This document shows, piece by piece, positions 3,098 through 58,986 of a stretch of 64,000 bases of DNA. Source of the stretch: Octopus sinensis (Eukaryota); assembly GCF_006345805.1 (NCBI RefSeq), contig NW_021832602.1:1-64000 (forward strand), given 5' to 3'. Every line of letters starts with the position of its first letter. Within the stretch, counting starts at the first letter, position 1. A program made the position numbers and the translations under genes. The notes below the pieces were generated by a model. It saw only the letters and a program-made list of their open reading frames with translations. It did not search any database and was not told where the DNA came from.

Positions 3098-4316
3098 ATG
3101 AAGAACTTTCTTTTCGTCCCCAGACTGACCTATATTCTCCGTTCCTCCCCGTGTTTCGCTGCCACAGACTCATTATCCAGAATCGATAATCTTGTCCACC
3201 AATCGCTAACATTCCACCTAAATTTGAGGTTCACTGGTGACGGTTTTACCCGTGCCAGTTTACCAACTCGCTTCGGGGGGATCGGGATCCGCCCTTGTGC
3301 GGACCTGGCCCTACCCTGCTATCTCTCATCCATGTCGGCTTCCAGGAATTCCGTTTGCTCAGTTCTACTTCCCTCTCTCGAACTTAATGAGCTCTCGGAA
3401 TTCTCATCTGCATGCCGTACGTGGTGCTCACTCGACCTTGATTTTCCCACGATCCCTTCAGTTCAAAGGGGCTGGGACGAAATTCTCTGCTTGAACACAT
3501 TACGAAAACTTCGCTCCAAGTCGGACCAACTCCAGCTGGCCACCCTTAACTGCGCCTGTCAGCCGCACACGGGTGACTGGCTCAAAGCTCTCCCCACTCC
3601 TAGTACGGGGTTACTACTGGACGACGAATCCCTGCGGATTGGGATCAGCTTACGATTGGGTTTGGACATCTGCCAGCCCCACCCTTGCCGGTGCGGGTCC
3701 TCAATTTCGTCAAACGGCTTGCACGCCTTGTCGTGTAAGAAGAGTGCCGGGAGAATTCCCCGTCACACTCATCTGAATGACGTTGTGAGGAGGGCTCTAG
3801 AATCGGCTGGTTTCCCTTCCACCCTAGAGCCAGTCGGCCTTTCCCGGAGCGACGGCAAGCGTCCCGACGGGATGACGACCTTTCCTTTTAGGGAAGGCAA
3901 GTCCCTGGTTTGGGATGCCACGTGTGTCGACTCTTTTTCGGCGACAATGCTTCCCAGGACTGTCGCAACCCGGGTTCCGCCAGTGCGCTGGCTGAAGAGA
4001 CAAAGATGACGAAATACCGGTGTATTTCGGACGCTTTTGAGTTTGCCCCCCTCGCCTTCGAAACCTCTGGAATCGTCGGAAAGGCTGCGACTCAACTCCT
4101 CACCGCCATTGGTAGAAAAATCTCCACAAAAACAAACGACCGGAGGGAGACGAGCTGGCTGTTCCAGCGAATCTCGGTTGCTGTGCTCCGCGGAAACTGC
4201 CACTCAATACGCAGCGCGGCATCGTTGAGCTGACCCTCAGGCTCTCGACAATTCCCTTAGCCACCCAATTGCTTACTTTTTTCTTTCAGTTTGATATACA
4301 AAAAAAAAAAAAAAAG
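3098..4316 (+). mobile_element. CRE-like non-LTR retrotransposon, 5'-truncated (thumb, CCHC knuckle, RLE endonuclease, poly-A)
   Basis: PRLTYILRSSPC, CRCGSSISSNGLHALSC, RHTHLND, KRPDG, WDATC, PLAFETSG, WLFQRISVAVLRGN; A-run at ~4299-4315; frameshift near 3960. Confidence 0.9.
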
Positions 4317-5699: not shown

Positions 5700-7090
5700 A
5701 GCTCATGAGATGTTCGCAACCAATGACCTGCTCCCACTGGGCTCAGGCACACTCATCCCGATACAAAAGGCCAACAAAACCTCCGGACCGGTGGAAAATC
5801 TCCGTCCCGTAATACTACTAAACACTCTGCGAAAACTTTTCTCACTCATTACACTCGGCCGCATAACCCGAACTGTTAATGAATATCTCTCCCCCAGTCA
5901 CAGCGGATTCAGGGCTGGAAGATCCACAGCTGATATAGTCTGGAGTCACAGATGGCGCTGCGCTGTCCAGCAGAAATTTAAAAAAGCTACGGCTATCCTT
6001 GGTATCGATATGTCAAAGGCTTTTGACTGTGTCCGTCGTGACCTATTTATCGGGGTTTTGGAAAGCTTCCCAGAGGCAGATGAAGTGAGAATGATACGGT
6101 TACTACTTGCTAAGACAGAACTTTCTGTTCGTATTGGGTCAGACTCCTCCAGGCGGTTCAAAACGAATGTCGGCACGCCTCAGGGAGACTCTCTCCCCTC
6201 TGCTATTTGTAATCTATCTGGAAGCCGCCTTGAGAGATTTGAGAACTTTCTATAATGATTCTATCACCGAAATTGTATATGCCGACGATGTGGATTTTGC
6301 CTCAGACAACATAGATGATATAATCCATCTACTAAACAATTCCCCACGGGTGCTTAACAAATGATTCCTGATAATTAACACTTCCAAAACTGAATTGACG
6401 GAGATAAAACAAATGAACGATAGAATTGGCGAAAGATGAAGGAACGCCAACAAACTCGGCTCCATACTTGGAGATAGTGAAGACATTTCTCGTAGAAAGA
6501 TGCTTGCTACCGCGGCTCTGAGCAGAATACGTAAAAAATGGCTCCAAGCTTGGCCGATAAATCGGGCCCTCAGATCAAGGCTTTATAATGCATTCGTAAA
6601 GCCTGTTTTACTATACAACTCGTCAACATGGGGGATCTCGGACACTGAACTGAAGACTATAGACTCTTTTCACCGTAAACAACTACGTCTCTTACACGGA
6701 ATACACTGGCCATCAAAAATTAACAATCTATCTCTGTATAAACATTACGATGCTACGCCGTTGTCTCAAGAAATCGTTGGAGGCCGGTAGAAATTATTTG
6801 GCAATATTTTGCGAATGGACCCCAGAGCTCCGGCCAATCGGGCAATGGACGATTATTTCTCCGAACATGGAGACAAATATCGTCGAAGACCTAGATCCAC
6901 TCTTCCGGCAGTTTTGGAGAGGGATCTCAAACTTCATGGTAAAAGTTTCAAAAACTGGGACGACCTAGAATCTTTGCGGGATCTCGCAACAGAGGGGCAT
7001 GGAATAGACGAGGATGGTCCAGAAGATTGTTTTACTTGTGACACGTGTGGGATTATAACTTTGTTTATGTTCCTACGGAATGTGTTATAA
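5700..7090 (+). mobile_element. RTE-like non-LTR retrotransposon RT and 3' end, decayed
   Basis: RPVILLN, GFRAGRST, DMSKAFD, GTPQGDSL/SPLLF, YADD, YNAFVKPVLLYNSSTW, FHRKQLR; stops and frameshifts. Confidence 0.85.
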
Positions 7091-8054: not shown

Positions 8055-8118
8055 CTATATTCCAAATTTTTTAACATTAATAATTGATTTAAGATAAAAA
8101 ATAATGATGAGCAAATAT

Positions 8119-9557
8119 CGTCAAATCTAGGGATCGCCTATAATTGCATAATATTTTACCCAATTCATTACATAATCTTATGTTTCCGCATATCCTCAAA
8201 TCGAGGGACCGATCCAAATTGCGTAATATACTACGCAATTCATAATATAATCTCAAGTACCCACATATCCCAACATCTAGGGACATCCCATAATTGCATA
8301 ATATATTACGCAATTTATTATATAATCTCAAGTACCCCTAAATCCTTTCATCTAGGGACCTTCCAGAATTGCATTATATATTACACAATTCATAATATAA
8401 TCTCAAGTACCCCCTTATCGTCACATCAAGAGATGAACCCAAATTGAATAATATATCACGCAATTCGTTACATAATCTCAAGTACCCTAATATCCTTACA
8501 TCTATGGACCACCGAATTTGCTTAATATATTACGCAATTGAATTTATAATCTTAAGAAACGCCATATCCTCACATCTGGTATTTCCATAATTGCATAATA
8601 TAATACACAATTGATTACATCATTTCAAGTACCCCCTTATCGTCACATCAAGAGATAAACCCAAATTGAATAATATATAACGCAATTCATTACATTATCT
8701 TATGTTCCCGCATATCCTCAAATCGAGGGACCGACCCAAATTGCATAATATACTACGCAATTCATAATATAATCTTAAGTACCCACATATCCTAACATCT
8801 AGGGACATCCCATAATTGCATAATATATTGCGCAATTTATTATATAATCTCAAGTACCCCCTTAGTGTCACATCAAGAGATGAACCCAAATTGACTAATA
8901 TATTACGCAATTCATTACATAATCTCAATACCCAAATATCGTCAAATCTAGGGATCGCCTATAATTGCATAATATTTTACCCAATTCATTACATTATCTT
9001 ATGTTCCCGCATATCCTAACATCTAGGGACATCCCATAATTGCATAATATATTACGCAATTTATTATATAATATCACGTACCCCTATATCCTTTCATCTA
9101 GGGACCTCCCAGAATTACATTATATATTACGTAATTCATAATATAATCTAAAGTACTCTAATATCCTCAAATCCTGTACCTCCCAAAATTGCATTATATA
9201 TTACGTAATTCATTACATTATCTCAAGAAACCCCATATCGTCACATATATCGACACTCCTGAAATGGCATTATATAGTAGAATTCATTACTCATGTACAA
9301 TCATATCCTCACATTTAGGGAACTCATATAAGTGCATAAAATATTACGCAATTCATTATATAATCTCATGTACCCCTATATTCTTTCATCTATAGACCTC
9401 CCAGAATTGCATTATATATTACCCAATTCATTATATAATTCAAAGTACCCTAATATACTCAAATAACCACCTCCCAAAATTTCATTATTTATTAAAATTC
9501 ATTACATAATCTCAAGTCCCCTCATATCGTCACATCTAGGTACCTTTCATAATTGGA
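8119..9557. repeat. 75-bp minisatellite, ~19-20 units, with higher-order variant order
   Basis: Unit starts at 8119, 8194, 8269, 8344, 8419, 8494, 8568, 8641, 8716, 8791, 8866, 8940, 9015, 9090, 9165, 9239, 9307, ~9382, ~9457, 9528. Confidence 0.95.
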
Positions 9558-9559
9558 GT

Positions 9560-10900
9560 CGTTTATTCCTTTTCCCAAATTTTGCGTTGGGCTCCCCTGC
9601 TCGTGTCCTCGATGCAGGTGGCTCCTTTGTTTCTCTCTTGAAAAAGAATATGAGTCAGTTTATGAATGGCTCTTTCGCTCCGTTCCCCTCTTATTTACCT
9701 TCTACCGCTAAGCCCTCGTCGAAAGACGGTTCTAAACGTTTACAGTCTCGGATTTACTCCTGTTTAATGTCGCATGATGTCAGCGCGGCTGTTCGTCTTT
9801 TGTCATTTTCTGATTCTGTCCGTACAATCTCCTCCGATGTTGTTCGCATTCTCAAGGAAAAGCACCCTATGTGAAAACCAGTAACCTTTGATGAGGCCCA
9901 ATCGTCCTGTTTTCCCTTTTCTGTTTCTTCCAAACAACTTCTGGACTCCTTAAACTCCTTTAGGGGTAACAGTAGTGGAGGTATCGACGGTCTCCGCCTT
10001 ATTCATTTGAGAGACTTAATTTCCGCAAATGGGGATACCGGGAATCGCCTCTTAAATGCTTGCACTAACTTGTGCAATTTATTCCTAAGCTGCAAAATTT
10101 CTGATCATACTAGAATTCTGTTCTTTGCCGCAAATCTTACGGCCTTGAGCAAGAAAGATGGCGGTATCAGGCCTATTGCTGTTGGAAATTTCTTTCGTCG
10201 TTTATTTGCGAAAGACTGTTGCAAGTCCGTTATTTCTTCTATTGGCGAGCAACTGCAGCCCATTCAGTTGGGTGTGGGTGTTTTTGGTGGCTGCGAGTCT
10301 TCTGTCCATGCCTGTCGTTGTTTTATTCACGTTTCTACTCGTTCCAATATTCCCCTTGCCTTATTGAAACTGGATGTAACTAATGCTTTCAATTCTCTGG
10401 ACAGTGGTCATATGTTGGAAGTCTGCCAAGACCGTGTTCCACACTTGCTTCCCTTTATATCGCTTTCGTACTCGCTTCCATCACGTTTAATCGCCAGTGG
10501 TTCTTTCATTTCTTTGTCATGTGGCGTCCAACAGGGTGATCCTTTGGACCCATTACTGTTCGCTGTACTGTTCGCCTCCGTTCTAGTATGGATTTGGCTC
10601 TTCCTGCCTTTCTTTCTTCGGCGTCTGGATCATATCTTCTTGTCCAAAAGATTCTGGAAAAAACTACTGAATCATCGTTGGACTCTGATATTGATTCGGC
10701 CCTCGCTCTTTGGAAACGCAATTTCTCTGAAGTCCCTTCTGATGTCTTTTCTCAGCGAGACTGGGACAAAATTCTTTGCCGTCGATCTTCAACTGACTTG
10801 GAACCACTTCTCGACCAACACAGACTGGCTTGTTTCCGTACTCAGACTCCTGGCTGAATGTACTCCCTTCTCCGCTTTTGGATACTGTCCTCGATAAGGA
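9560..10900 (+). mobile_element. CRE-like element fragment with internal deletion after RT motif QGDP
   Basis: SSGGIDGL, KKDGGIRPIAVG, KLDVTNAFNS, GVQQGDPL, then a jump at ~10575 to MDLALPAFLSS and DQHRLAC. Confidence 0.85.
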
Positions 10901-10924: not shown

Positions 10925-11240
10925 TTGCCACTGAGATATCTTTCGAGTCACTGTGTGGTCCCCAAAGGGGACAACACAATTCGCTGAGATATGCTTACTA
11001 ACAATCTCGTCCACTCGAAAGAGTAAAAATAAGTCGCTACTCTGTTGCTCGTGTTGTTCAGAATACGAGGGCATCCTGTAGGCATATCCTAAGCGCCATT
11101 TCTCTCCCGAGGCCAGGAGGAACACTGAACCAGGTTGGGCCACCCATTCCTGGGCATCTTGAAAGCTCTTTCCAACATTTTGGAAAGAATTGATTTAGCC
11201 CACACTCCGGGGTCACACACCACAAAACGAAGAAAAACTT
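10925..11240 (-). other. Unassigned higher-GC open frame, possible host exon fragment
   Basis: Open frame VCDPGVWAKSILSKMLERAFKMPRNGWAQPG...; candidate in-frame 27-nt GT-AG intron; no family recognised. Confidence 0.25.
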
Positions 11241-11735
11241 TAATGAATATTTCGCTAAAATGTGAGCTTCTCTATTTTTTGCAATAAATTTATATTTTCT
11301 ATTCTGAAAGTGTAATAATAAACTTTCGAATTTAATTAATTTTTTAAATATCATTATTTTTTGAGACCTCCAAATACTATTCACAGAATTTGAATGATTT
11401 TTTACATTATCCACACAAATAAACCAATTTTTTCGCCTTTAATCTTTCGTTTCGTAAATGTCACTATATCTTTGGATATTCCAAAGTCTAACTGAGAATC
11501 AACAAACTCCCAGGTTGTGCAGATCAAGGAGTGTTCTTCTTCTAAGGAGTGTCCTCAAAGGGGTGACAAACAGAATAGGGATAATGGATCTCTTCGGGAG
11601 TGCTAAGTGTTGTTTCAAAGCTTCTCTATCATCTAACTATTCTGACTGCCGTAAGACGCCTCTGACTACTTGTAGCAGCCTATACCTCTTATTTAAAATG
11701 TTCATAAGATGACATGATAATTGATATAGAAATTT

Positions 11736-14700
11736 TTAATCATGTTCGGTGGCCTCCAACTCATGTTTAATAGAATCAATGATGGAGGAGATAGTTTGAG
11801 AGACACGGCGGATAGGATCGAGAGACATCACCTACAATGGAAGATAGTGGGATATACTGGAGTGGTTGGTGCTGGAATAAGGCGGGAAATGTGCTACAAT
11901 AAGGGGGAAAGGGAACCGAAAGACAGGCAGTAAGGGATTGTGTGATATTCAAAGAAGTGAGAGCCAAACAAGTGGCAAGATGAGTGGAGTGGTTGATGAG
12001 TCCAGTGTTGATAGCTCTGCGAGTTGTATAATTAGTGTAGGGGAGTGAGATAAGTGTGGCGAGACGGGAGACTATAAGTGAGTTAGGGAAGAGGACATAT
12101 TTGGAGGACGTGAGAGTGTGAGAGGAGGGTGGGCAACTGAATATCGGCAGCCCAAAGATGGACAAGTTGTGTGAAGACATTGGCACACCCATTGACACTG
12201 TGAGTAATGAATCGAACACACCCGTAGTTGATGTGCACACATTTGAGTGGAATCTCAGACTTGTTGATAGTGGCGAATGCAAAGAGCAGTTGAAATAGAA
12301 ATACTCGCCACTGAGTCACACTCTCCACGCTCACGTTCCAATTACCCGCATATGTAAGTCTCACCACCAACGAAGGATAAAACTGGATGTCTCGGAAGTA
12401 CACACCACCACCCATATCCTTCTCCCCCGAGGGCAGAACGTGGGACACACACTCATTAAGAAAAAGAAGCGAGTTCTAGAGTACTGGATGAATGCAAACT
12501 TGGTCGACGTCGATGTCAAAGGGACAAGAACTGATTCGGAGAATGTAGTCCTTAGTGTCGTCCCACTCATTGGCCACACCGAGCACTCTCACCACCTGAC
12601 TATAGTCGACCAACACTACCGCCTGTATATTCGACGGAATCCCCTTCTCTCGAAAACACGCCAGCATCCTGTACTCCTCGCAATTCACCCTCCCACGTAT
12701 CTCCACACATCGCACTCCAAATCCCCAGAACGAGTCCCTCTCCATCTTCTCGGGCGATTTCAAGTAAACTGACTTGATACTCTTCACCGACAACACTACA
12801 CTACTCTCCCCTCCAACACAGCTCAACGAAAACAAACTCACACTCAAGTCCACACGCACCCGTGGGAAGGGAAATGACTTGGGAGGGTCCGTTCGCTCAT
12901 TTTTCCTTCCCGCCTTGAAAAAATCATTCTTGACGTAAGGACAGTCATGTGCAGCGAATACAATCCTCGGCTCATATAACTACAATAAGACAACTATTCA
13001 CGTCATCTGGGCAGTCATCCAACGAGACCACTCCATCACTCAAAGGGGACGACTCAACACTCTTTACAGAAGAAGTGGTCTTTTTACACATTTCTATCAC
13101 ACCTTCACAATCCTCACACTCCACCCTCTCCACGTCCTCTCCCGCCTGCCCCGTAGCAATGAGGTCTATGCACTGTCTGAGCAAATATATTGTAGTCGGG
13201 AGAGTGTCTCTGCAAACTGATATCTCGAGACTATTGAGGGTAATAGACACAACTGAGTCCCCGCCCTTCAATGACCTCACCACCAGTACTTCTTGGCAGT
13301 CCCTCTTCATGTGAATCAGCGCACTTTTAATATCAATCATGTCCATGCTTAGTCTCCGCAAACAGATATCTTCCATGTATATACTGCCAGTAGAAACAAG
13401 GAGTACCAGTAGTGCCCATTGGAGGGAAACAACGATATGAAGAGGTCCAGTTTTAATGAGAAGGAAGCATCTGGTAGTACACTTCATGTTACCCGACTAC
13501 ATACCCTTCAAAATCAAAGGTCAAGTCCTTCAAACACAAATGAAATGCCGTTTTGGAGTGCTCGGTGTGGTCACCGCCAGAAACGGCAGATATTTTCGTC
13601 CACTTGTCGATAAACTAAAAAATAACCAAAAAAGAATTACAGAGGTGGATAGAGGAAGAAGGAGGTGTTCCAATTGAAGAACAAAATTGTGGTCTTGCCA
13701 CACAAAGAACAAGCGCGAATGTGTTTCGATATCACTAAATGCGTAGACTGATTGACTGTCCTCACGAGTGTGTGCGAATACATGCGCATTCGATAAATTG
13801 AATTGAATGACATATTGCAGATGGATACTCCCAATATCAACCACACAGTCAATGCTGGCTGCTCCTTCCGTTGCTCGGGGAGTGCGAATATAAGGAATAA
13901 GTGTGTCCAAGTCAATATCCATGGACTGAATGTGAACTGTGAGATGTGAGTGGACGAGTTGCTCCACGACCAGTTCGGTGAGTTTGAGGGGATCGACCTC
14001 GAGAAATAACTAGTGTTGATTGGCGGAAAGTACTACTGGTTGGTCAATGTGGAATTTGCCGTTGTACAGAGTAGGAATAAGAGGGGATATAAAGGGAGTG
14101 GTAGTGTAGTGTGCCATGTTAATAGTATTCCCACTCACCACTCTCGCCTGATGCAATGTGCCTGAGTGTGACTCTCCAACCAATACAAGCAAACTCGAGG
14201 ATGTGAATGTCAGTCCTCCCTCCCTTCTTTACCAAGTGGGCCTCGCTAATGGATACCCCCCATTCACTACTGGTCACTATCCACACCCACCCGTGCAGTA
14301 ATTCTGCCCTCTTAACACATACTTCACAGTCCCCACTTGCTCCGTCACTCCTCTGCTGAAGTAGGTCGAGTAATTGGTCGACTGAGTACAACACAATCGA
14401 GTCCATAAAAACAGAGAGGAAGTCTCCCTATTTGTTACAATAAAAGAGCACATAATATTTGAGAGGTGTCCTCGCCAGTACTATCTTAGCCACCAAACAG
14501 TCATTGGTCAATACATGGACACACTCTCCCACAGTGATGGACAGCCCCTCATTCTGAGTAATGTGAATGTCCCCAGTACTCCCTCTGTATGTGTTACCCA
14601 CATGCACACTCTATTTTCGTGTCCCCCAGCAAATATGTCACACATATGTGCCCAATCTGCACACTCGCCTCGACTCTATTGCCTCTCGACTTCGGGGCTA

Positions 14701-15461
14701 AAGAGGACACCAGATGATGCAAGGAAGGGTTGAGCGTGACGTGGAGAGAGGGGATGGTGCATTCCACAGTCAACTAGAGGGAATATGGGAGGACAGTACT
14801 GTGCCCTCCGAGAGTGTCAGTCTCATATCCATTCGCTCAGTCGTGAGTGCCTGAGGGAGTCAATTAATGTGTCACCATCCCATCAGTCGATTGAATCCCC
14901 ACATCACTCAAGGATACAATCTTGTCGACCAGCGAGTTGGTAATGTGTGGAGTGGATACCCCAATTCTGTAAATGTCCATTAATTGTGCTCACTCTCTTA
15001 TTCGTATAGTCAAGAATGAGCATTGCATTTTCACCTCCCATGTCACATTATTTATATTCACAATTATTCCTTTCATTACTAACAATAGATTGTCCATTCA
15101 TACTTGAATAGAACAGGTCTGTTATGCTCTCCACCGTGTCTTCAACCATGTCCTGTCTTCTGAGCGGACACGATCTTGCAGAGGTGACTGTGCTCTGCAA
15201 TGCCAGTCCCTCGATTGTCCACGTCCAGTGCTTCCCGAACGATATTTCGATCCCCTTCACTCTCCCACCCGATAATGAGTGCCGTACGCCCGCCTTTTCC
15301 AACTCCTCGTTTATTTTTGGCACGTTCAAGTCCAGGTTGCTTAGGCATATTCCCCCACTCACGTTTAGACTGAACTCCTCCCCCAAAATGAAGTATCCAC
15401 TCAGCACTGTGTTCACCAAACATTTTTGTGCTTCTCTTAGTTTGTTGTTAATGTAATTCAT
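11736..15461 (-). CDS. ATG2: Autophagy lipid-transfer protein ATG2-like, multi-exon with tiny introns
   Basis: Chorein-N-like start (ICLSNLDLNVPKINEEL...GRVKGIEISF); YILRISSCPFDIDVDQ; VYFRDIQFYPSLVVRLTYAG; ATINKSEIPLKCVHINYG matches the ATG2 AQLNCSELKLKRL region; ends DPIRRVSQTISSIIDSIKHELEATEHD*; exact exon structure not fully resolved. Confidence 0.8.
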
Positions 15462-15900: not shown

Positions 15901-16059
15901 AAGGATCCCTCGTCGCTTGCAGCACATTCCAATAGACTTAATTACAAAACAAAATCGCCCTTTTAATCATTTTTACAAGGTTTTTACTACAATAAAAGAA
16001 TTTTAATAATAGTTGATTCGCCAATCTCCGGTGGAGGGATATCCACTGTTATCACCGAT

Positions 16060-16890
16060 AGGAAACGTGATTCAGTCCTTCGACCTCTATGCACACATTG
16101 GGCTATTCCTCATTAAAAACTACCTTTGTATCCCGCGTTTCACCTACTTACTCCGTTCATCCCTGTGTTTCCGGGAACCCGACCTGTTGTCTGACCTGTA
16201 TTTTATTATCTGGGTGTCTGTCGATAAATTACTCATTTTTAACTTCTCTGGAGACAAACTTACTCGTGCAATGTTACGTCTACGATTTGGTGGTATTGGT
16301 ATCCAATCGTGCATGGATATCTCTATGCCTTGCTACATATCTTCGCTTTTGGCATCGAAAAATTTTGTCAATTCTGTTCTTTTTTCCTCTCCTGAACATT
16401 TCGAACTGACTGAATTTTCTTCTGCTTTCAAAGTTTGGACTGCATCTGGTTTTGCCATCCCAGAGCTGGATCATTTTCAAAAAGTTGGGATTCCATTCGG
16501 TATATAAAAATCGTAAAATCCCTGAAAACAAGCTCAGATCAAATTGAACTCTTCTCAATGAACGCAGCCGCGCAACCACACTCAGGGGATTGGTTGAATT
16601 CCTTCCCACTATCCTCAGCCAGGTTTACTCTTGGATGATGAGTCAGTTCGACTCGGTACCTGTCTACGACTCGGAATCCCTCTTTGCCACCCCCATCCGT
16701 GCAAGTGTGGGTAGTTGATAGACTCGGATGGGCTTCACCCTCTTTCCTGGCGGTTAAGCGCTGGAGGTACCCCGAGACAGTCGAGTTTTAACAACTTCGT
16801 CAAACGGGGCCTTAATGCCGCAGGCCTCACTTCGGTTCTGGAGCCCATTAGTCTTGATCGCGAAAACGGTAAAAGTCCGGATAGAGTGCA
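16060..16890 (+). mobile_element. CRE-like fragment, decayed
   Basis: IPRFTYLLRSS, RFGGIGI, QPHSGDWLNSFP, HPCKCG, DRENGKSPD. Confidence 0.85.
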
Positions 16891-16899
16891 AGTGTGTTC

Positions 16900-17357
16900 G
16901 AGGGATTGTCGAGGAAGGAATTGGGGTCTGGCTGGTAGAAAACTGTGAGCAGATGACTAAACTGTGGGAAACACTCGGAATACTCAAATCGACACTCGAG
17001 TATGTGAGTAACATTTCCCAGTCCTCGGTTGGTTGGACGACTGGTGGACATTTGCTGAGGATATGAACAGTACTCCGTATTTTTGGGAGACCAAGCAGGA
17101 GAGCATCAGAAAGTTTATGTCTCCAGAAACTCAGTCTGGATGAACAGGATGTATTTTATGTGAGCAATGACAGAACGGACAAACACTGCGGCACGAATAT
17201 AATCACGCTTATCTACCACACGTACTTCACTTGAAAGCTCCATCTCTCCACAGGTCTTCGGCAGACTTCATATTTTCACAATGCCACGACTGATCAAATC
17301 GAAATAATCAGATCGAATGTCGACAAGTTCAAGGGATTGTACAGGATGCTGATTTAA
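16900..17357 (+). other. Unassigned spliced gene 3' fragment, probably pseudogenic
   Basis: GIGVWLVENCEQMTKLWETLGIL, candidate 22-nt intron GTATGTGAGT...CCCAG, terminal frame HNATTDQIEIIRSNVDKFKGLYRMLI*; contains an internal TGA. Confidence 0.3.
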
Positions 17358-17478: not shown

Positions 17479-19183
17479 TCATTCCATTTCATAGTGTGAT
17501 TGGTAGGATTTTACTAACAAATAAAAATTATCTAAACAACCATATGTGTTGTCAGTTGGGATATAAAAAACAAGAGCAGGCTCAAAACGGTATTTCAACA
17601 AAATTCGGCTATTATGCAAACCATTAAAAAATACTCGTAAAATAAATCTCCAACACTCTTGCCAAGTTCTATCAATCGTCGTTGCCTTATCAAATTGTAC
17701 ATACTGAGAGGAATAGTAGCATCATAATTGAGGTTACTGGTTACATAACAGCATACAAACCGGTATGCAGGGGACAAGAGAGTGAACCCTCTCAGCATAT
17801 GATCTTCCGGAAGGGCAACATTGAGAGGACTTGTTAAATTCCGACGAGTATGTTCAGCTAATATATTGAGATAAGCACACAAATCTGACCAAAATCTACA
17901 TTCAGAGAACTACAGAATACTTGTTGGGAAATATTGGGTAGTCAAATATTTGAGTATTTTCGTTCATCCAGCCAAGTATCAAAATTAGTGGAGGAATGAT
18001 ATAAGAGTGATTGATTCCCGTTGACAGTCCCCTCTTGATGAGGATGAGTGCAAGATTAACTGAAATAATAAGAACCTGTACCGGTGAATCCAATAGCCTC
18101 GAGCAAGAGGGGAGACGCCAAAGTTTGCTTATTCTTCAGAATGACGCTATAATGTACAAATGTGCCTACTCTGTCACGAATATGTTCAATACGCACACTT
18201 CCATCAGTTGGTAAAAACCCAAACCCTCGTCTACTGCTACAGAAAACCGTGATTTAAAACGTTCCCGAAGATACTCAAGCTTGTCTTCACCTAAAAATCT
18301 TTTTAGTACCAACCTTCACGTGTATGCAGCACAGCATGAAAGAAGAGCAAAGTGCTCATCCAAGAATCTACCATCGACGAAGGTCCGAGAGTGTGACTAT
18401 TGTGAAATGGATAGCAAACCCTTGGTGACATATTTTTGTGAGGAGGACATCGAGGTTGACTTTTCCTGCCATGAACGGTCGGTCAATGGCTACACTTCGA
18501 ATATATAAAAAAGCAGCAGTGAGTTTGTTTCCGGCCAGAATTGCCAGTTGGTTGTATACATGGCCATTTATAGGTTGAAGGTTCTTCCCCAAATCGTAAT
18601 ACTCGCGAGCCTCATCAGTGGAATTCCCGTACCTACCTGATATTAGAAACACCTTCTCTACAAATGTCCCCCAGGTGGATAAGGCAGTCTTGGCATATAA
18701 ACAACTCATAGTCCTTCCTTTGGACGTTCCTCTCGTATGTTTGCGAAACGCTAAAATTAATAAGACGGTTTTGAGGAAAAGATATGTTGAAATTGTTGGA
18801 AAGTTTTTCTAGCAACTACTTAAAAGTCAAAACTAAAATAACTTTGATATAGAATCCTTTGATTGAGGAGAGGGCAAATTGGTAGTTCTAGAAATGTTAG
18901 TTCGTAGATACATTTGAGTTTTTTTTAATATAGGTCAGTTTATTTTTAATTACAGTATTCCACCTATCAATTATTAATCTGATAAAACAATTTTTGCTCG
19001 CATCTGTGGTGGAGGGATTCTTCGGTGTACTCTAAAAGGGCTGTGCTGTACAAGTTTAGCAGGTCCCAGTTTATATATACTGAATCTTGACGATCTAGCT
19101 ATATGGGTCATACTATATACGGGTTTCCTTTTCAATTTCCCTGATTTATTATAAGTGTACAACAACCTGAGTAATTCCTCCAT
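17479..19183 (-). CDS. SMG7: NMD factor SMG7-like (EST1 and EST1_DNA_bind domains), multi-exon
   Basis: SIKGFYIKL, ICQDCLIHLGDICR, YNQLAILA, FLYIRSVAIDRPF, LPEDHMLRGF, IRQRRLIELGK follow SMG7 in order; ends approximate. Confidence 0.8.
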
Positions 19184-19323
19184 TATTTTAATGTATTAAT
19201 AATAATTATTTCATAGACTATTTTTTCTGTAGGACTTATGTAATTAAAATACGCTATTATGAAATTTTTCTCAATTTCTTATCTGTCAATTTTTTATAGA
19301 ACATGCAATTTATTAAATAATTA

Positions 19324-20013
19324 ATGAGGACTCTCGGCCGCACATCCTCACAGCGCGCATGGCTCGGCGCCTACCCATCTACATCAACAGGAACCTTTTT
19401 GGATGACGACTGCCTGAGGATCGGGATCTTCTTTCGGCTTGGCCTCGAAATATGCAGCATCCACCGATGCCGATGTGGAGCCAAAGTCAACGCTAAAGGG
19501 CTCCACCCTCTTTCGTGTCGTAGGAGTGCCGATCGAAGTCTCGGCCACGCCTCGCTAAATGACGTCGTGCTTAGAGCCCTCAAGACTGCAGGCTTTCCGT
19601 CACAACTTGAGCCTGTCGGATTGGACCGTGGTGACGCTAGACGCCCAGACAGAATGACAATCTTTCCTTTTCGGGACGGCAAGTGCCTCGTCTGGGATGC
19701 TACGTGCATCGACTCTTTCTCTCCATCGGCAATCATGTCATCTGCCACTTCCCCCATGTCCGCTGCGGAAAACGCTGATACGGCCAAAATTAAAAAATAC
19801 CAAGAACTTGGACGCCGTTTTATATTCTTACCAATCGCTTTGGAGACATCGGGCGTCGCAGGGCCTCTAACCTCGGCCTTCATCAGCGACATCGGGAGGA
19901 AATTGGCCCACAGGACGAAAGAGCCACGCGAGGTTTCGTGGCTATTGCAGCGGATATCTATCGCTATTCTCCGTGGCAACACGCATGCGGTACTTTCCGC
20001 AGGAGGGTGCTAG
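19324..20013 (+). mobile_element. CRE-like 3' fragment (knuckle plus RLE), frame intact
   Basis: CRCGAKVNAKGLHPLSC, RPDRMT, WDATCIDS, PIALETSG, WLLQRISIAILRGN. Confidence 0.9.
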
Positions 20014-20754: not shown

Positions 20755-22837
20755 ATGATTCAAGCATTGTATATTTCGTGCCTTTTTAATGACGATTCTC
20801 TTGAACCATTATGTCTTGAAATGCACCCGGTTAATATATACTATTTATTTAAAGAGTCTAGTCGAAATATCTAACGTTCATTTAATAGATCTTCTTTTGA
20901 ACAATTTTTTTTGTTCAGAAATAAATGAAATTTACATATTCTGTCAAAGACAAACTGATCAAATTGTTCAGCACATAAAGTTGTCTAAGCATTAAAATAA
21001 TAAAATATTTTAGTAAACTGCGCCAAAAATATTTTAAATTAAGTTTCAAATTTATCTACAACGAACATTGCAAATCAATTGGAGATGTTCTCCGACTTGT
21101 CTGCAACTTGAAAATTTTTACTGAACATTTCGTCCTTATTGCTAATCCAATTGTTTCTCGTTTGGACATATCAGCTTGTTTTGTTCGACATAAATTAAAA
21201 AAAGATCCGCTAGTAACAACTCTGGTTTATAAAATCGGATATTCTGGTATGTCAGAACTCAATGAGTTTCTTAATTTGACTGTCGTGGCTGATTCGGGTC
21301 TTCTTGTTAACTACAAGCATACTGGATATCCATCTGATATCGAATTATTCTCGGTAATTTTATTTACTTTTTCTATCGATGATAATATTTTTAAATTAGC
21401 ACTGAAATGTCGTCTTTGTGTATACAAAACTAATACTTAATAGATAATGAGTCGTTATAAACTTCCACCCGTTCTCTCTTCTTGTACCGATGCCATTCAA
21501 ACTAACGTGGCAATATGTTCTCCATTATTTTTAACAATATTTATTGACAATTTCGATTTTCATACCCTCGGTGACTTTTTTTACGAGCACTGTGAAAATC
21601 AGGAAGTTTAAAATATTTATACATTTTAGATTATGTCCAATAATGTTTATGTTGAATTCAGTGACGAATATGTTTTGCCAATAACTTCGATCGAAACGTA
21701 TTACAAGGCTTGGTGAGAATATTTTAATTATTTTAGCATGGATGACCTTTCGAGTGCATTAGAACAGCCAAGAGTCAATGATTACGATTATTTTCCCAAG
21801 AATAATGTTTTTTGTCATAAGTCGGCTACTATTCATCACAGGTTTATTACCATTGGTTATTTATAAATTAGTGCTAATATTCTATCTTCAATTGTTGGTC
21901 CAAATACACACATTGGTCGCTCATGTACTGTTAAAAGTAGTTCAATTTCGTCGAATGTGATTATCAACTCGAATGTGACCATTTCAAACTCGATCATATA
22001 CTCGGATTGCATAATTGAAGATCGATCTATATGTCTCACCTCAATTTTAGCAAAATTTTCGCGTCTTTGTTCAAAATCTTTTATTTCGTCAGGAGTTTTG
22101 ATTGGTCCTGGTGTTAAACTTGAGGGAAATTCAGTCTTAACCTCTTCGCGACTCATTTGCACAGGAAATGTGGAAGCACGTTTCTCAGACTCTGCATATT
22201 TTTACCGCCATTATAGAAATGAAGGGAATTGTACTTCTAAATGGGGAGTTTCTCGGGCTATTGTGGACAATTCTGATGATCTGGAAAGTTTTAGCCCTGA
22301 AAATGACGAAAACTTTATTTCCGAGGCTCATGAGACGATTAGTCGCTATTTAGGCAGTAAGGCGTCAGGAGTTGATAACCTTATCATTGAATTGAATTCT
22401 CTGAAGCTGATTTGCAATCTTTCAATTTCTCAGCTGCAAGAATGCGTTATTGTTTTATTCCTTAAATTTGTGAACCAGGATGAAAAATTATTTTTTTCGG
22501 ACTTATCTCAAGTTGATTTTATTATTTTTTAGTAATGTTTAGTTATTCGAACAAATGGCCCCAGTATTGAAATTTTATTTGAAAACAATAGAAGCACAGA
22601 TTGATTCTTTATTTGGAGTCGAAGTTAGTTATAGTGTTTTTATTCAAGAAATATTTGGCTTGTGCGTCTTATCTTCAGACTGAGCTCCCTCGAATTTTAA
22701 TGCTTTTTTACGAATTAGACATTATTCACGAGGATGCATTTTTATCTTGGTATCCTCAAGTGGAAAACTCTCAAGTTAAGAAGTGTTCCTTCTCTTTTAT
22801 TGACTGGCTTACCAACGCGGATGAAGAGTCTGATTAA
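20755..22837 (+). CDS. EIF2B5: Translation initiation factor eIF2B subunit epsilon, multi-exon
   Basis: IQALYISC..EPLCLEMHPSLVEISNVHLIDLLL (NT-like domain), hexapeptide left-handed beta-helix near 21850-22150, W2 domain ending YELDIIHEDAFLSWY..FIDWLTNADEESD*. Confidence 0.9.
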
Positions 22838-25687: not shown

Positions 25688-26625
25688 TTAACACGAGTTT
25701 ATAAAGAGCCTGGAGGTCAGCTCAAAGACGCTGCGTATCGAGTGGCAGTTTCCGCGGAGCACCGCGACCGAGATTCGCTGGAAGAGCCAGCTCGTCTCCC
25801 TCCGGTCGTTGGTCTTTCTGGCAATCCTCCTGGCAATGTCGGTAAGAAGGCGAGTCGCAGACCTGTCGACGATTCGAGATGTTTCGAAGGCGAGGGGGAC
25901 AAACTCGTAAGAGTCCGAAATACTTTCATACTTCGTCCTCTTAGCGTCCTCAGCCTGAGCACTGGCAGAACCCGGGTTAGTGATGGACTTGAGTAACATC
26001 GTCGTGGAGAACGAGTCAACACAAATTGCATCCCAAATCAGGGACTTGCCTTCACTGAAAAAGAAGGTAGTCATCCCGTCAGGACGCTTTCCATCATTCC
26101 GACAGAGACCGACTGGCTCTAGAGTGGAAGGGAAACCTTCCGATTCTAGTGCCCTTTTGACGACGTCATTGAGGTTAGTGTGGCGAGGAATTTTGCCAGC
26201 ACTCTTCTTGCACGATAGGGCGTGCAAACCGTTCGGCGAGATTGTGGACCCGCACCGGCATGAGTGGGGCTGAAGATGTCCAGGCCCAAGCGCAAGCAAA
26301 CACCAATCCGTAAGGATTCGTCGTCCAGAAGTAGTCCCGTACTAGGGGTAGGGAGTGCTTTGAGCCAGTCTCCCGTATGCGGCTGGCAAGAGCAGTTTAG
26401 AGATGCCAGTTTGGCTTGGTCCAACTTTGACCGAAGTTTGCACAAAGTGCCTGACCAAAAGATTTCGTCCCAGTTCTTTTGAACTGAAGGGATCGTCGGA
26501 AAATCCAGACCGAGTGACAACCAAATACGGGAGGCTGATGAGAATTCGGAGAGCTCGTTAAGTTCGAGAGAGGGAAAAAGAACCGAGCAGACCGAATTCC
26601 TGGATGCCGAGGTCGAAGAGAGATA
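25688..26625 (-). mobile_element. CRE-like 3' fragment (same subfamily as 3098-4316)
   Basis: QPHTGDWLKALP, KRPDG, WDAICVDS, PLAFETS, WLFQRISVAVLRGN. Confidence 0.9.
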
Positions 26626-26629
26626 GCAA

Positions 26630-29220
26630 GGACACTCCAGTCACGTGACACAGAATCATGGATCCGCCTTTTCTGTTTTGCACCTCTTGGACTTGGAACT
26701 TCTGTGCACTCTTCAGAAAACCGCAAGTCTTTGGCTTCTGAAATTAAAACGCATCTAAAATCCCTCCTTGAACGCCCTATTGAGGAACTAATTGATCAGC
26801 CTGAGCGGCACGACGAAACTAATCGGCCACGCTTGGGAGATGAGAAGGAGTGGGTCAGAGGAGAAGTTTCTCGTAAATTCATGGTGGGGGACCTGCGGGG
26901 AGCACTCCGTGCTATTTCCAACGACGGCAAAATTTTGCCGACGACACCTGAGATCTTGGATCAACTCAAATGCAAGCACCCGTCGGCCCCGACGAATGTG
27001 CGGCCGTTCCATTTTATAAATTCCACACTGGATGCGAAAACACTTAAGGAGGAGATACTCGCATGCATTTCCTCTTTCAATGGGGGCAGCAGTGGCGGAA
27101 TCGATGGCTTGCGTCCGAGCCACCTGAAGGATTTGGTTTCGGCCTCAGCGCACGAGGCTGGCCGGCTCGCTTACAGCTCTGGTCCAGCGCATAATCGAAG
27201 GGGACATTCCCGTGATCGCTAGGGAGCTCCTCTTTTCTGCCCATCTTCTTGCTTTCGGCAAAAAAGACGGTGGGATACGTCCAATTGCTATTGGCAACGT
27301 TTTTAGAAGACTTGCTGCTAAAGTCGCTTCACGAAGGGCATCACAGAGACTCAGCTGCGAACTTTCGCCACTTCAGCTGGGTGTGGGAATCCCAAATGGT
27401 TGCGAAGCTGCAGTGCATGCAACCAGAGAATTCTTCTAGCAAAAAGGGAACTCAAATGGTCCCGGAGTTCTAGCTATAAAACTAAACATTAAGAATGCAT
27501 TCAACAGCCTGAGGAGAGATGTGATTCTCGAAACCTGCTTAGAAAGGGCTCCTGATATTATCGGCTTGGTTCACTTGGCATATGGGTCAGACAGCTCTCT
27601 TCTTTTTGGAGATGAAATTATTAAATCGTGCACAGGAGTTCAGCAGGGCGACCCTATCGGTCCACTGCTGTTCGCCCTCGGCATTGACTCTGCCGTACGG
27701 AAAGTCGATTCTTTTTTCAACCTGTGGTACCTCGATGATGCAACCATCGGGGGCCCCTCTGATACTGTGATTGAGGATATTTTCAACAACATAATTCCCA
27801 CCCTTTTCAACATAATTCCACCCTTCGTGAAATTGGACTGGAAGTAAACGTCAGGAAGTGCGAGCTTATAAATATCTCTTGCTCGCACGAAAAATTCGGT
27901 TCCGCACTAAACAAGCTGCAACTTCGCCTGCCGGGGCTGACAACCACACCCATTGATGATGTTCTATTCCTCGGCGCGCCCATGGGCCAAATCCAACTTA
28001 AGAAGTCGCTATCTGAGAAAGCCAAATGGGTCACTGATTTCACAAATAAGCTCATGTTGCTTGATTCTCACTACGGATTTTTCGTGCTCAGAGTAAACCT
28101 CATGTTGCCAAGGCTTCTATACTTGCTGTGAACTTCAAACTGCTCAATACAATCTGACATGCTTCAATCGCTCGATACTTCTCTGAAGTTGGCCGCTGAA
28201 AAAATCCTAAACATATCCTTTGATGACGCTGGTTGGACTTGTTGCAAATTACCTCTACGCCTTGGCGGAGTTGGACTCCGTTCACCTCTGGACATGGCTC
28301 TTCCTGCATTCCTCTCCTCACGTGCGAGCTCCCAAGCCCTCATCACCCAAATCCTACGTAACTCTCGCGGATTGGAAGAGGACCGGGTTTTCTCTGGAGC
28401 TTGCGAATTCTGGAAGGGATCTGGATTGGCCATTCCATCTAACATTTCACACCAATGGGAATGGGATGATATCTCCAGCAAAGCTAAAATGGAAGCAATC
28501 AGACCTACATTGGATCAGCATCGCCTCGCTTGTCTCGGTGCCGCTGCCAGACCTGAAAGTGGGGCGTGGCTTAATGCCCTCCCTTGCTCCCAATCTGGAA
28601 CCCTTCTCGATAATGACTGTGTGAGGATTGGCGTAGCAATACGCTTGGGACTTAATGTCTGTTCGGGGGGCCAATGCCGATGTGGTAGTAAAGTCGATAC
28701 CAAAGTACTACATCCTTTGTCATGCAGAAGGAGTGCTGGCCGTGCTCCCAGACACTCCGCTATCAACGAGACTATTTCGGCTGCGTTACAAGCAGCTGGA
28801 TTCCCGACAGAACTGGAACCCGTTGGGCTTGACCGTGGAGACGGTAAACGCCCAGATGGAGTCACCATTTTCCCGTGGAGTAATGGGAAATGCCTCGCGT
28901 GGGACTCCACGTGCACAGACACCTTCTCAAAGACCAATATAGTTGACTCCGCGATCAGTCCAGGCTCAGCCGCTGAGAAGGCTGAGGTACATAAAGTTCA
29001 GAAATATTCCAACCTGTTGGACAACTTCATCTTCTCCCCAATATCCGTAGAAACCTCCGGGGTCATGAGCCAAAAATCGTTCGAACTCGTCGGGAAAATC
29101 GGGAATCTGATCTCGAGAAGACGGAGAGAGCCTCGGGAGAAGCAATGGTTGTTCCAAAGAATATCCATTGCGATCCTGAGGGGCAACGTCTTCTCGATCA
29201 TCAGTAGCTTTAGATTGTGA
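26630..29220 (+). mobile_element. Near-complete CRE-like RT-RLE ORF, pseudogenised
   Basis: WIRLFCF, SSGGIDGLRPSHL, IRPIAIG, GVQQGDPIGPLLF, WYLDD, CRCG..LHPLSC, KRPDG, RISIAILRGN; several stops and frameshifts. Confidence 0.95.
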
Positions 29221-55255: not shown

Positions 55256-56085
55256 TTGCTAATGTTGTATGAAAACAAGTTTGGAGGCAACATTACTGTT
55301 GTGCTTAAAGTCAATAACCCCTCGATGGGATCTATTAATATTTTTAACACGCTATGCAACATGAAATCGATCAAGAAGGCACGAGTTTCTCGCCGACAGT
55401 CAGGAGAGTTTATACTGAATTTCAAAGTCGAAAAAGATGTGGAAAACTTTCAAATTGAATTAGAAGAAAGCAAACCTTTTGGAGAGGGAGGCCAGTCTCT
55501 CAAAAATAAGAAATTCGGGCCAGTGGCAATAATTCTAAAAAATGTCCCAACTTGGATCGAAATTGAGGAACTCGAAGACTTCCTGAAGGGCAAAGTGAAA
55601 GGAAAAATGACTCTCGAACGCTTTGAGAAAAGGGGAGTGAGACTCCCTATTATTAAATTGGTAACTTCTGATCATGGAGAAGCTCAATCGCTTGTACGAT
55701 TGGGGCTAAAGATTGGCTTTTCGAATGTAAAGGCCGAGTGGTACAGAAAACCGGAAGTCCAGTGCTATCGATGCCAAGGTTTGGCCACATAGCACGCTTC
55801 TGTAAAAATCAGGAGAAATGTCTATTTTGTTCGGGTACACATGCTGGAACAGATTGCAAGGACTCTAACATGAAAAAATGTGTCAACTGCGGTTCTTCGA
55901 GCCACTTGGCAAATTATCGGGGCTGTGAGAAAGCTAAAGAAGCTTCAAAGCTGAAAAATGATAAAATTCTGGTTCAGAAACTGTTAAAAGAAGCTTCGGA
56001 GAATGCTAAAATCAACCAAACAGACATAAAAAATTTACCCTTGAAGCCATGGGCGGGATGGAACGTTCCAAGAGTATTCCATTAG
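55256..56085 (+). mobile_element. Gag-like ORF1 with three CCHC knuckles (Jockey/I/R1-type LINE), one frameshift at ~55780
   Basis: QCYRCQ.FGHIARFC, KCLFCSGTHAGTDC, KCVNCGSSSHLANYRGC, preceded by an RRM-like AIILKNVP..LPIIKL region. Confidence 0.85.
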
Positions 56086-58848: not shown

Positions 58849-58986
58849 TGGAACGTTCCACGATCCAATAGATAACAAAAAATTAATTAAGTCGGCAAAG
58901 AAGCAAGAGCCAAAGAATGTGCTGGTTATTGTATTCGTTGTTAACCCCAAAACACGCTTGAAGCCTTCCAACAAAAAATAGTATCT

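Follow-up and report, generated by a model that had tools for sequence, protein, structure and literature searches.

In the 64,000-nt window analysed here (contig NW_021832602.1, positions 1 to 64,000, filed under Octopus sinensis), the G/C skew extremes of both signs lie within one gene, a homologue of ATG2 encoded on the minus strand. What process makes the strand asymmetry of a single gene change sign repeatedly? The familiar cases, namely bacterial GC skew, the skew jumps at mammalian origins and transcription-coupled skew, are driven by transitions that place G with T, and replication and transcription skews span tens of kilobases to megabases, or whole transcription units. A preliminary description of this DNA attributed the flips to a local, strand-asymmetric mutational process that overrides protein constraint, and suggested replication or ssDNA/R-loop deamination as its source.

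The gene itself is intact and spliced. When up to 13 short introns were permitted, the minus-strand frame was open over 3685 nt, as compared to at most 1654 nt in 40 shuffles preserving local composition and 1001 nt on the + strand. The coding region (11776..15461, 1116 codons) extends from the ATG at 15461 to the stop codon at 11778-11776 and comprises 14 exons, at 15461-15104, 15078-14994, 14966-14876, 14850-14800, 14773-14610, 14584-14452, 14427-14187, 14161-14037, 14009-13641, 13614-13505, 13470-13002, 12979-12500, 12475-12097 and 12071-11776, separated by 13 GT..AG introns of 22-34 nt. Read-through is possible on the minus strand alone, consistent with the earlier statement that the transcribed strand does not change, and coding on alternating strands was rejected because the + strand cannot be chained.

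The identification as ATG2 was supported by profile comparison. The last 302 amino acids matched an alignment of 25 ATG2 C-terminal sequences, covering Pfam PF13329 and the W..DI..QLP...LP..QY...G block that follows it, over 224 collinear columns (hhalign 98.5%, E=2.1e-15). Comparison of the N-terminus with five vertebrate ATG2A N-termini gave a weak hhalign match (E=0.03, probability 1.6%), which was collinear (residues 26-88 versus 30-104) with 32% identity; no Pfam match to Chorein_N was obtained there, even at E<=10, and an AlphaFold prediction of exon 1 made without an alignment was unusable for assigning the rod-shaped, repeating beta-groove fold of the family (mean pLDDT 33.7). The protein shares a homologous, collinear C-terminal region with the ATG2 family, whose members are bridge-like lipid-transfer proteins, and its N-terminus may resemble Chorein_N, at the position where this domain is expected. 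In contrast to the family, this protein is short (1116 aa), extremely diverged and without a Pfam or PDB sequence match, and the last ~190 family-conserved alignment columns have no counterpart in it. It ends ~54 aa past the aligned part, and the extreme C-terminal segment PxDxREG...GAVGGV.R..P...KW is absent, with conserved columns beyond 715 unmatched when aligned to the family profile by hmmalign. Pfam searches using ten minus-strand ORF pieces and the full 1116-aa model, as well as phmmer searches of PDB chains, found nothing relevant.

Several properties of the contig point to an unexpected source. Although labelled Octopus sinensis, it is apparently DNA of a dicyemid kidney parasite, a reading that rests on the very short introns, the base composition and the load of LINEs, all of which fit dicyemids. 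Spliceosomal introns in dicyemids are mostly <30 nt, and those of ATG2 (22-34 nt) and of its neighbours are alike in this respect: a 23-nt intron restores 20 conserved residues in an MTMR gene, and candidate introns of 26 nt allow a carnitine acyltransferase gene to be chained. Among animals, introns of such length have been reported only in myxobolids and Dicyema (PMC13644364). The GC content is 38%, similar to the 36.7% of D. japonicum, whose genome is LINE-rich with 49% repeats and for which Octopus sinensis is the collection source. The preliminary description had allowed that the segment might be a contaminant or a chimeric join; the contig does appear to be a parasite contaminant, but ATG2 is no chimeric insert, since its introns are of the same type as those of its neighbours. 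Scanning of the window for Rfam families and tRNAs found nothing. The concatenated ORFs had no match when searched by word index against 5.8 billion proteins, exact look-ups of two ORFs returned no record, and the most conserved exon, compared in full by phmmer with 1.84 billion representatives, matched one spurious repetitive ORF only; in the collections searched, which hold no dicyemid genome, no ATG2 orthologue, paralogue or polymorphism data were found.

The DNA of ATG2 is made up of blocks of ~50-1200 bp, at least four and probably six in number, between which the polarity switches while the sense strand stays constant. Only six 200-nt windows in the 64 kb reached |z|>=4.5 for G versus C, and four of these, representing both signs, lie in ATG2. 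Optimal partition of G versus C on the + strand, which defined the block boundaries, found six change points in the 3.7 kb at ATG2 and few real ones elsewhere in the window, and label shuffles gave only the segments forced by the algorithm. Block 1 (11765-12183), at the 3' end of the gene, is G/purine-rich on the + strand (G152/C43, skew +0.56, AT skew +0.21; silent sites G42/C3), leaving the coding strand C-rich and G-poor, with G3/C33 at 4-fold sites and G0/C9 in the interior of intron 13. Its codon-position periodicity is almost erased, yet it still aligns to ATG2. Block 2 (12184-13388) is C-rich on the + strand and G-rich on the coding strand (+ strand G213/C364, skew -0.26, falling to -0.5 in the core at 12600-12800; silent-site segment 12188-13152, skew -0.40; coding-strand 4-fold sites G64/C27). 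Block 3 (13390-14113) is moderately G-rich on the + strand, with a skew of +0.15 over 13390-14067 and of +1.0 in its last 45 nt (14069-14113, 20 G and 0 C); its coding-strand 4-fold sites are G14/C33. Block 4 (14114-14693) is again C-rich on the + strand (G96/C181, skew -0.31; coding-strand 4-fold sites G30/C13), and the short block 5 (14694-14803) is G-rich (G44/C15, skew +0.49, rising to +0.63 in the core at 14694-14759), with G1/C10 on the coding strand in the interior of intron 4. Block 6 (14804-15461), at the 5' end of the gene, is C-rich on the + strand and G-rich on the coding strand; its skew is weakly negative (windows -0.2 to -0.37), with coding-strand 4-fold sites of G36/C10 and a silent-site segment at 14989-15414 of G6/C32 on the + strand.

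These results bear out most of what had been read from the letters by eye. The hand counts per 60-nt line were exact at 11941 (G21/C5), 12661 (G5/C28), 14041 (G22/C4), 14281 (G6/C26), 14701 (G27/C7) and 15241 (G9/C24), and a sharp flip does fall inside an exon, at 14113/14114 within exon 8 (14161-14037); two flips are sharp and the others gradual. The alternation of G-rich and C-rich blocks stands, but the proposed size of 250-900 bp does not, as the segmentation gives 45-1205 nt. As had been noted, the gene including its introns is more GC-rich than its surroundings (0.466 over 11776-15461, versus 0.28 in the immediate flanks and 0.384 in the window; exons 0.473, introns 0.397). The skewed, GC-rich stretch extends from ~11 nt past the stop codon to the start codon, and the neighbouring fragments at 10925-11710 and 16900-17357, previously described as similar, show mild skew only.

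Whether the skew merely reflects protein composition was checked at 4-fold sites and in introns, and it persists there: the bias, which is as strong or stronger at 4-fold sites and is visible in intron interiors, acts on the DNA itself. The 4-fold G/C counts were 21/75 in the blocks with a C-rich coding strand and 130/50 in those with a G-rich coding strand (Fisher p=6e-16; purine versus pyrimidine, p=1.5e-15), and intron interiors followed weakly (13/33 versus 30/31, p=0.046). Segmentation of silent sites alone gave four segments and recovered the 12183 breakpoint, while 200 shuffles gave at most two. The 4-fold composition of the G-rich strand was similar where it serves as sense (G.42 C.16 A.24 T.18) and as antisense (G.39 C.11 A.31 T.19; chi-square p=0.21), as compared to G.19 C.18 A.29 T.34 in other genes in the window. 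When the two block classes were oriented to the C-rich strand, their dinucleotide and trinucleotide profiles correlated at 0.86 and 0.82, respectively, and CACAC and CACTC were enriched 3-5 fold in both. Silent-site composition and k-mer signature are therefore the same for either choice of sense strand. Comparable bias is absent from the other genes in the 64-kb window; a comparable silent-site flip in a LINE was considered and rejected, since its ORF2 keeps one sign throughout.

The protein follows this bias passively. In the blocks with a C-rich coding strand, G+A+V+D+E make up 22% of residues and P+H+Q+T+L+S 52%, versus 34% and 32%, respectively, where the coding strand is G-rich. Over 40-codon windows of ATG2, 4-fold skew and the skew of codon positions 1+2 are closely correlated (r=0.86, p=7e-9), as compared to r=0.33 in the LINE ORF2 and r=0.02 in the MTMR gene. 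The earlier observation that amino-acid use tracks the skew also holds at conserved ATG2 positions: at family-conserved columns of the G-poor block, only 3/12 residues that require a G-containing codon were kept, as compared to 9/15 other residues, and near-invariant Gly and Asp were lost in this 3' block. Thus, 4-fold sites, introns and the correlation of silent with replacement sites uphold the proposal of a DNA-level bias that overrides protein constraint; the deamination and replication mechanisms offered for it were not supported.

The asymmetry is of a kind that fits neither classic C-to-T deamination nor the skews of replication and transcription. AT skew moves together with GC skew, such that G goes with A and C with T, and this purine/pyrimidine asymmetry indicates a transversion-type process. 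At two-fold NNY sites, where transitions are the sole silent changes, the block classes do not differ (0.46 versus 0.50), and both exceed the 0.35 of other window genes. In contrast, two-fold NNR sites differ between classes (0.43 versus 0.68, p=0.002), so that the process is neither perfectly strand-symmetric nor purely transversional. Deamination of ssDNA or R-loops predicts T enrichment on the C-poor strand. This proposal does not fit here, as T is low on that strand and G pairs with A; nor was the TpC depletion of an APOBEC-type deaminase seen, the TC dinucleotide odds ratio on the G-rich strand being 1.13-1.14.

The switch points themselves are inconspicuous. A shared motif, which the preliminary description had suggested looking for, was not found at them, nor was a hairpin or repeat (hairpins at flip points, z -1.05 to +1.65). 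An origin of the flips by duplication, inverted or direct, was rejected, with short chance matches only, as was derivation of ATG2 from LINEs or other sequence in the window, blastn and tblastx giving no matches.

We consider that a local, strand-asymmetric mutation or repair process acting on DNA, with a polarity that switches between blocks independently of transcription direction, stands about an even chance of being the explanation. Its net effect would be pyrimidine-to-G change on one strand, equivalent to purine-to-C on the other, atop a general AT-to-GC shift. We speak of mutation on the strength of base composition, as the case consists of one locus in one genome, with no orthologue found for polarising substitutions. 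Such a process could operate where resected breaks or gaps leave long DNA single-stranded: this DNA would be damaged and the complement then filled in by a translesion polymerase that inserts C (REV1/Pol zeta type), as happens in mutation clusters of the strand-coordinated kind; a switch of the exposed strand would then switch the polarity. Among specific mechanisms this is the most likely, but it is much less certain than the general process and is put forward tentatively. The confinement of the bias to one transcription unit is not easily explained by a purely regional DNA process.

A close parallel for such a mechanism is kataegis, in which strand-coordinated clusters form at resected breaks and uracil excision with REV1 yields C-to-G changes. 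Kilobase-scale tracts mutated on one strand, a polarity switch at the break and C-to-G transversions without loss of GC are points of likeness, and the composition of ATG2 is compatible with alternating tracts of this kind. Kataegis events are somatic or experimental and occur in TpC context. In contrast, ATG2 would need a saturating record fixed in the germ line, read here from composition; T also is apparently lost on the G-rich strand, and TpC is not depleted on the C-poor strand. A more far-reaching reading, which we regard as doubtful, is that the blocks are a footprint, fixed in the germ line, of events that recur at set positions and leave one strand exposed or resynthesised, overwriting near-invariant residues of a core autophagy protein and defining a 'saw-tooth' class of dicyemid genes. 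Candidate events in the development of dicyemids would be programmed breaks, excision or circle formation, and patch repair templated by RNA or by reverse transcriptase. The silent-site composition of the blocks on the C-rich strand (C > T > A ~ G) resembles that of the sense strand of the LINE family filling the window, a hint that both may share a bias of polymerase or repair.

A transcription-linked origin, through R-loops or exposure of the non-template strand and perhaps with internal antisense units or fungal-like regimes along the transcript, would explain the limitation of the bias to the transcription unit and the extra sense-strand effect at two-fold NNR sites. It also has a precedent in fungal genes, whose 5' and 3' ends carry opposite skews that reach 4-fold sites and amino-acid use, attributed by the authors to mutation pressure or nucleotide-level adaptation (PMC3315797); thus the rule, invoked in the preliminary description, that transcription-linked skew keeps one sign per gene is not strictly true. 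ATG2 resembles these genes in its within-gene sign change on one transcribed strand, its reach to 4-fold sites and its shifted amino-acid use. However, in fungi the pattern emerges as an average over the genome and changes once, gradually, the coding strand being C-biased 5' and G-biased 3', whereas ATG2 is one gene with about five flips, amplitudes up to +/-0.5-1.0, ends of the opposite polarity (5' G-rich, 3' C-rich) and unaffected neighbours. A transcriptional origin is unlikely, as polarity is not fixed to the transcribed strand, both signs occurring on one sense strand with about five switches; at silent sites the G-rich strand has the same composition as sense or as antisense; C-to-T deamination would give a T-rich, C-poor strand, where T is in fact low; and other window genes show nothing similar.

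Cryptic simplicity generated by slippage, in which C/A- or C/T-rich motifs spread in either orientation through a fast-evolving, weakly constrained protein, is likewise improbable as the main cause. In its favour are the enrichment of CACAC and CACTC in both classes and an excess of local 4- or 6-mer repetition in 3/6 blocks (z 2.8 to 4.2) that control genes lack, and a 22-nt tandem duplication is present at 11869-11910. The repetition excess is modest (~1.4 fold) and may in part reflect local composition; moreover, the strongest block is collinear with the ATG2 family without large insertions, and the bias is found at dispersed 4-fold sites. Slippage may nevertheless contribute, given this excess.

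Sub-kilobase replication asymmetry, arising from dense fixed origins and termini or from small amplified or excised circles with their own leading and lagging strands, appears quite improbable. Sign changes of skew are the classical mark of origins and termini, and the asymmetry in ATG2 shares with replication and transcription skew its presence at neutral sites and a sign that would mark the exposed or newly synthesised strand. Yet classical replication skew pairs G with T, whereas here G pairs with A, in sub-kilobase blocks whose sign does not depend on which strand is sense; the skew is bounded by the gene ends and does not form domains that extend into the flanks, and the switch points lack a common motif, hairpin or repeat. 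Dicyemids are reported to carry thousands of small circular DNAs, of the same order of size as the blocks (median ~700 bp in the >500 bp pool), but in that study the conserved domains on circular contigs were mitochondrial only (PMC6543705).

Selection, whether on protein composition, on codon usage or on pairing between distant G-rich and C-rich stretches of the mRNA, could account for the strong amino-acid difference between blocks and for an mRNA minimum free energy somewhat below that of mononucleotide block shuffles (z=-3.1). It is nonetheless very improbable: the bias is present at 4-fold sites and in introns, long-range pairs make up the same fraction as in shuffles, so that such pairing was rejected, global and block shuffles fold alike, and no inverted repeats were found. 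An assembly chimera, foreign insert, sequencing error or dead gene drifting under relaxed constraint is highly unlikely despite the Octopus sinensis label on parasite-like DNA, the near loss of codon periodicity in the 3' block and the many conserved ATG2 residues gone, as a frame of 1116 codons with 13 intact, neighbour-like introns cannot come from read errors or a join, and drift alone would not make such blocks where neutral window DNA is AT-rich and unskewed.

If a switching strand-asymmetric process is indeed responsible, then a DNA-level bias reverses polarity repeatedly inside one nuclear gene and sets the amino-acid composition of each stretch, family-conserved positions included. Mitochondrial strand asymmetry offers a likeness: it alters protein composition and changes sign on inversion of the origin, with fan worms as an example (PMC13602327), so that skew drives amino-acid composition and sign reversal is tied to strand role. 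There, polarity is a property of whole genes or genomes, whereas ATG2 is nuclear, intron-bearing and reversed several times internally. The contig and its annotated proteins, filed as Octopus sinensis, apparently belong to the kidney parasite, and compositional mosaics within proteins are a source of artefact in the contested phylogeny of dicyemids. In this gene, strand-specific mutagenesis or repair in the germ line of an animal would have left a natural record that is unusually easy to read.

When the + strand was optimally partitioned by G versus C, six change points of skew fell within the 3.7 kb of the ATG2 homologue (minus strand, 11776-15461) and few in the remaining window, in agreement with the repeated flips reported in a preliminary description of the sequence; shuffled labels gave only the segments forced by the algorithm. 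The blocks lie at 11765-12183 (+ strand skew +0.56), 12184-13388 (-0.26), 13390-14067 (+0.15), 14069-14113 (+1.0; 20 G, 0 C), 14114-14693 (-0.31) and 14694-14759 (+0.63), beyond which the skew is weakly negative. Only six 200-nt windows in the whole 64 kb reached |z|>=4.5 for G versus C, and four of these, with both signs represented, were inside ATG2. The six hand counts per 60-nt line in that description were exact, and the gene is, as it stated, more GC-rich than its surroundings (46.6% GC, versus ~28% in the immediate flanks and 38.4% in the window; exons 47.3%, introns 39.7%). The fragments at 10925-11710 and 16900-17357, which had been said to resemble ATG2, proved only mildly skewed. 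Similar short palindromic motifs, GTCCCCAAAGGGGAC (10950-10978) and GTCCTCAAAGGGGTGAC (11538-11565), sit in GC-richer fragments directly downstream of the ATG2 stop. The minus strand of 16900-17357 holds a candidate small gene ('MKSAEDLWRDGAFK' start, candidate 18-nt intron, then 'DKRDYIRAAVFVRSVIAHIKYILFIQTEFLE'), and its ORFs had no Pfam match. A tandem array at 8115-9545 (75-nt unit, ~19 copies, 73% matches; period 447 also seen) is strongly C-rich on the + strand (skew -0.47) with a GC content of only 32%.

The minus-strand frame opens with an ATG at 15461, closes with a stop at 11776 and spans 14 exons (1116 codons); its 13 introns, all GT..AG, are 22-34 nt long. Composition-matched shuffles (n=40; each 60-nt stretch preserved) gave open chains of at most 1654 nt with an equal intron number, and the + strand chained to 1001 nt. 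Both fall far short, so skewed composition does not account for the long frame. Sequence searches with the model and ORF pieces returned no relevant match and retrieved no orthologue or second copy. We then compared the model with a profile of 25 diverse ATG2 proteins, for which a human ATG2A sequence served only as bait to fetch the real proteins. The last 302 residues matched this profile with a probability of 98.5% (E=2.1e-15, 224 collinear columns); the N-terminus aligned at the expected Chorein_N position with E=0.03 only, against a shallow vertebrate profile. In the alignment to the family, the last conserved segment of ATG2 had no counterpart in the model. Judged from these alignments, the predicted protein is a short, extremely diverged ATG2 homologue.

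The skew, whose behaviour at 4-fold sites and in introns the preliminary description had singled out as decisive, persists at both. Coding-strand 4-fold sites contained 21 G and 75 C in coding-C-rich blocks (G-rich on the + strand) versus 130 G and 50 C in coding-G-rich blocks (p=6e-16), and the classes also differed in purines versus pyrimidines at these sites (p=1.5e-15). Intron interiors shifted in the same direction (G/C 13/33 versus 30/31, p=0.046). Circularity was avoided by correlating skew at codon positions 1+2 with 4-fold skew in 40-codon windows, which gave r=0.86 (p=7e-9) for ATG2, 0.33 for the retrotransposon control, LINE ORF2, and 0.02 for an MTMR-like gene. Silent sites alone (n=788) segmented into four, with breakpoint 12183 recurring, and 200 shuffles of them gave two segments at most.

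AT skew co-varies with GC skew in ATG2, and the blocks are therefore purine-rich or pyrimidine-rich. On the G-rich strand, 4-fold composition was G.42 C.16 A.24 T.18 in blocks where this strand is the sense strand, versus G.39 C.11 A.31 T.19 in the antisense blocks (p=0.21 for the difference); other host genes of the window had G.19 C.18 A.29 T.34. When the two block classes were oriented alike, their dinucleotide and trinucleotide profiles correlated at 0.86 and 0.82, with CACAC and CACTC enriched in both. Two-fold NNY sites, whose only silent changes are transitions, did not differ between classes (0.46 versus 0.50; both above the host value of 0.35), and NNR sites did (0.43 versus 0.68). 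The bias shown by these data acts at the DNA level, changes strand from block to block and is independent of the sense strand. Taken together, it comprises a general AT-to-GC shift and a purine/pyrimidine asymmetry that is mainly transversional; the polarity of this asymmetry does not depend on transcription, although a smaller sense-strand component is present. Transcription-linked regimes are one of the rival explanations.

As the preliminary description had noted, amino-acid use follows the skew: the share of G+A+V+D+E rises from 22% of residues in coding-C-rich blocks to 34% in coding-G-rich ones, and that of P+H+Q+T+L+S falls from 52% to 32%. The G-poor 3' block is still alignable to ATG2 (QLP..LL, LP..Y, GL). 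At its family-conserved columns, 3 of 12 residues with G-requiring codons were kept versus 9 of 15 others, with replacements such as GG to SH and D to T; this lower retention is suggestive, not significant. The three codon positions of this block are nearly alike in composition. Since G-to-C changes never create stop codons, its open frame is weak evidence of selection.

A mutation or repair process of this strand-switching type is a fairly probable cause, and would convert pyrimidines to G on one strand, equivalent to purine-to-C changes on the opposite one. When single-stranded DNA carries abasic sites at its pyrimidines, bypass by the C-inserting polymerase REV1 has a pyrimidine-to-G outcome, and strand-coordinated clusters around resected breaks show this outcome, with polarity switching at the break. 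REV1 bypass at resected breaks is our preferred specific mechanism for ATG2, but with a low probability. Several points count against the proposed process: the bias is restricted to one gene, most flips are gradual, the deaminase context is missing (TpC depletion was absent), and the ATG2 mutations are inferred rather than directly observed. Replication units or circles are an alternative source of switching polarity. Inverted and direct repeats in ATG2 were short chance matches only, hairpins at flip points were not unusually stable, and neither DNA nor protein comparison linked the gene to the LINEs or to other parts of the window. Slippage may contribute, given that local k-mer repetition is modestly in excess in three blocks and that TRF found one 22-nt duplication, although no large insertions interrupt the alignment of the strongest block to ATG2. 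Selection and an artefact were the other alternatives considered. Pairing of G-rich with C-rich stretches in the mRNA equalled that of composition-matched shuffles and was rejected.

The closest phenomenon described so far concerns fungal genes, whose 5' and 3' ends have opposite skews, at 4-fold sites as well (PMC3315797). As in ATG2, amino-acid use is altered as well, but the fungal pattern is a single gradual change, a genome-wide average and of opposite orientation (PMC3315797). We found no description in the literature of multiple high-amplitude polarity switches within one nuclear gene, and no mention of skew in dicyemid genome papers. The ATG2 pattern was observed at a single locus.

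The GC-rich parts of the window are many non-LTR retrotransposon copies and fragments, among them a + strand copy at 55256-58981 with an RVT_1 match in ORF2, and fragments at 3098-4009, 5710-6255, 10007-10897, 16013-16900, 19324-20013 and 25688-29220. By eye, they share with site-specific R2/HERO-type elements a C-terminal Cys-rich motif and an RPDG...D motif. LINE ORF2 silent sites are C-rich with one sign along the whole ORF. The LINE sense strand at silent sites (e.g. 56345-58978; G.19 C.35 A.16 T.30) resembles the C-rich strand of each block in ATG2 (about G.14 C.41 A.18 T.27), and other host genes are without such bias. Pfam identified genes for an EST1/SMG-like protein (17600-19200, minus strand), an eIF2B-epsilon-like protein (21957-22532, + strand) and a carnitine acyltransferase (29712-31600, + strand), the last chainable through AT-rich introns of ~26 nt.

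The window is bases 1-64000 of contig VCDQ01012509.1 (assembly GCA_006345805.1). Its intron-poor myotubularin-related (MTMR-like) gene (42472-44165) matches, at 100% identity, an annotated Octopus sinensis protein on that contig; fish, insect and annelid proteins, the next-best relatives, reach only ~50% identity. The database model removes an 83-nt intron (43576-43658, minus strand), losing 20 conserved residues; a 23-nt GT..AG intron (GTAGGTTTCTTCTTTTACTTTAG) in its place brings back 'RISAINENFEVCDLYPSILA', a stretch that aligns to WRISKIN..YELCDTYP, a block conserved in all relatives. The protein (42469-43548, minus strand) reads VVVHSSDSGDR where active members of the family have VHCSDGWDR, and with its catalytic cysteine replaced by serine it may be an inactive pseudophosphatase. 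The window is compact, gene-dense, about 38% GC and rich in reverse-transcriptase elements, with introns of 22-34 nt. Among animals, introns below 30 nt have been reported only in myxobolid myxozoans and Dicyema (PMC13644364). The genome of D. japonicum, which was isolated from Octopus sinensis renal sac, has 36.7% GC and 49% repeats; LINE copies are numerous and introns average 38 bp (PMC6736024). Based on the ultra-short introns, compactness and reverse-transcriptase load, the contig is most likely DNA of a dicyemid kidney parasite inside the octopus assembly. If so, the proteins annotated from VCDQ01012509.1 carry the wrong organism name.
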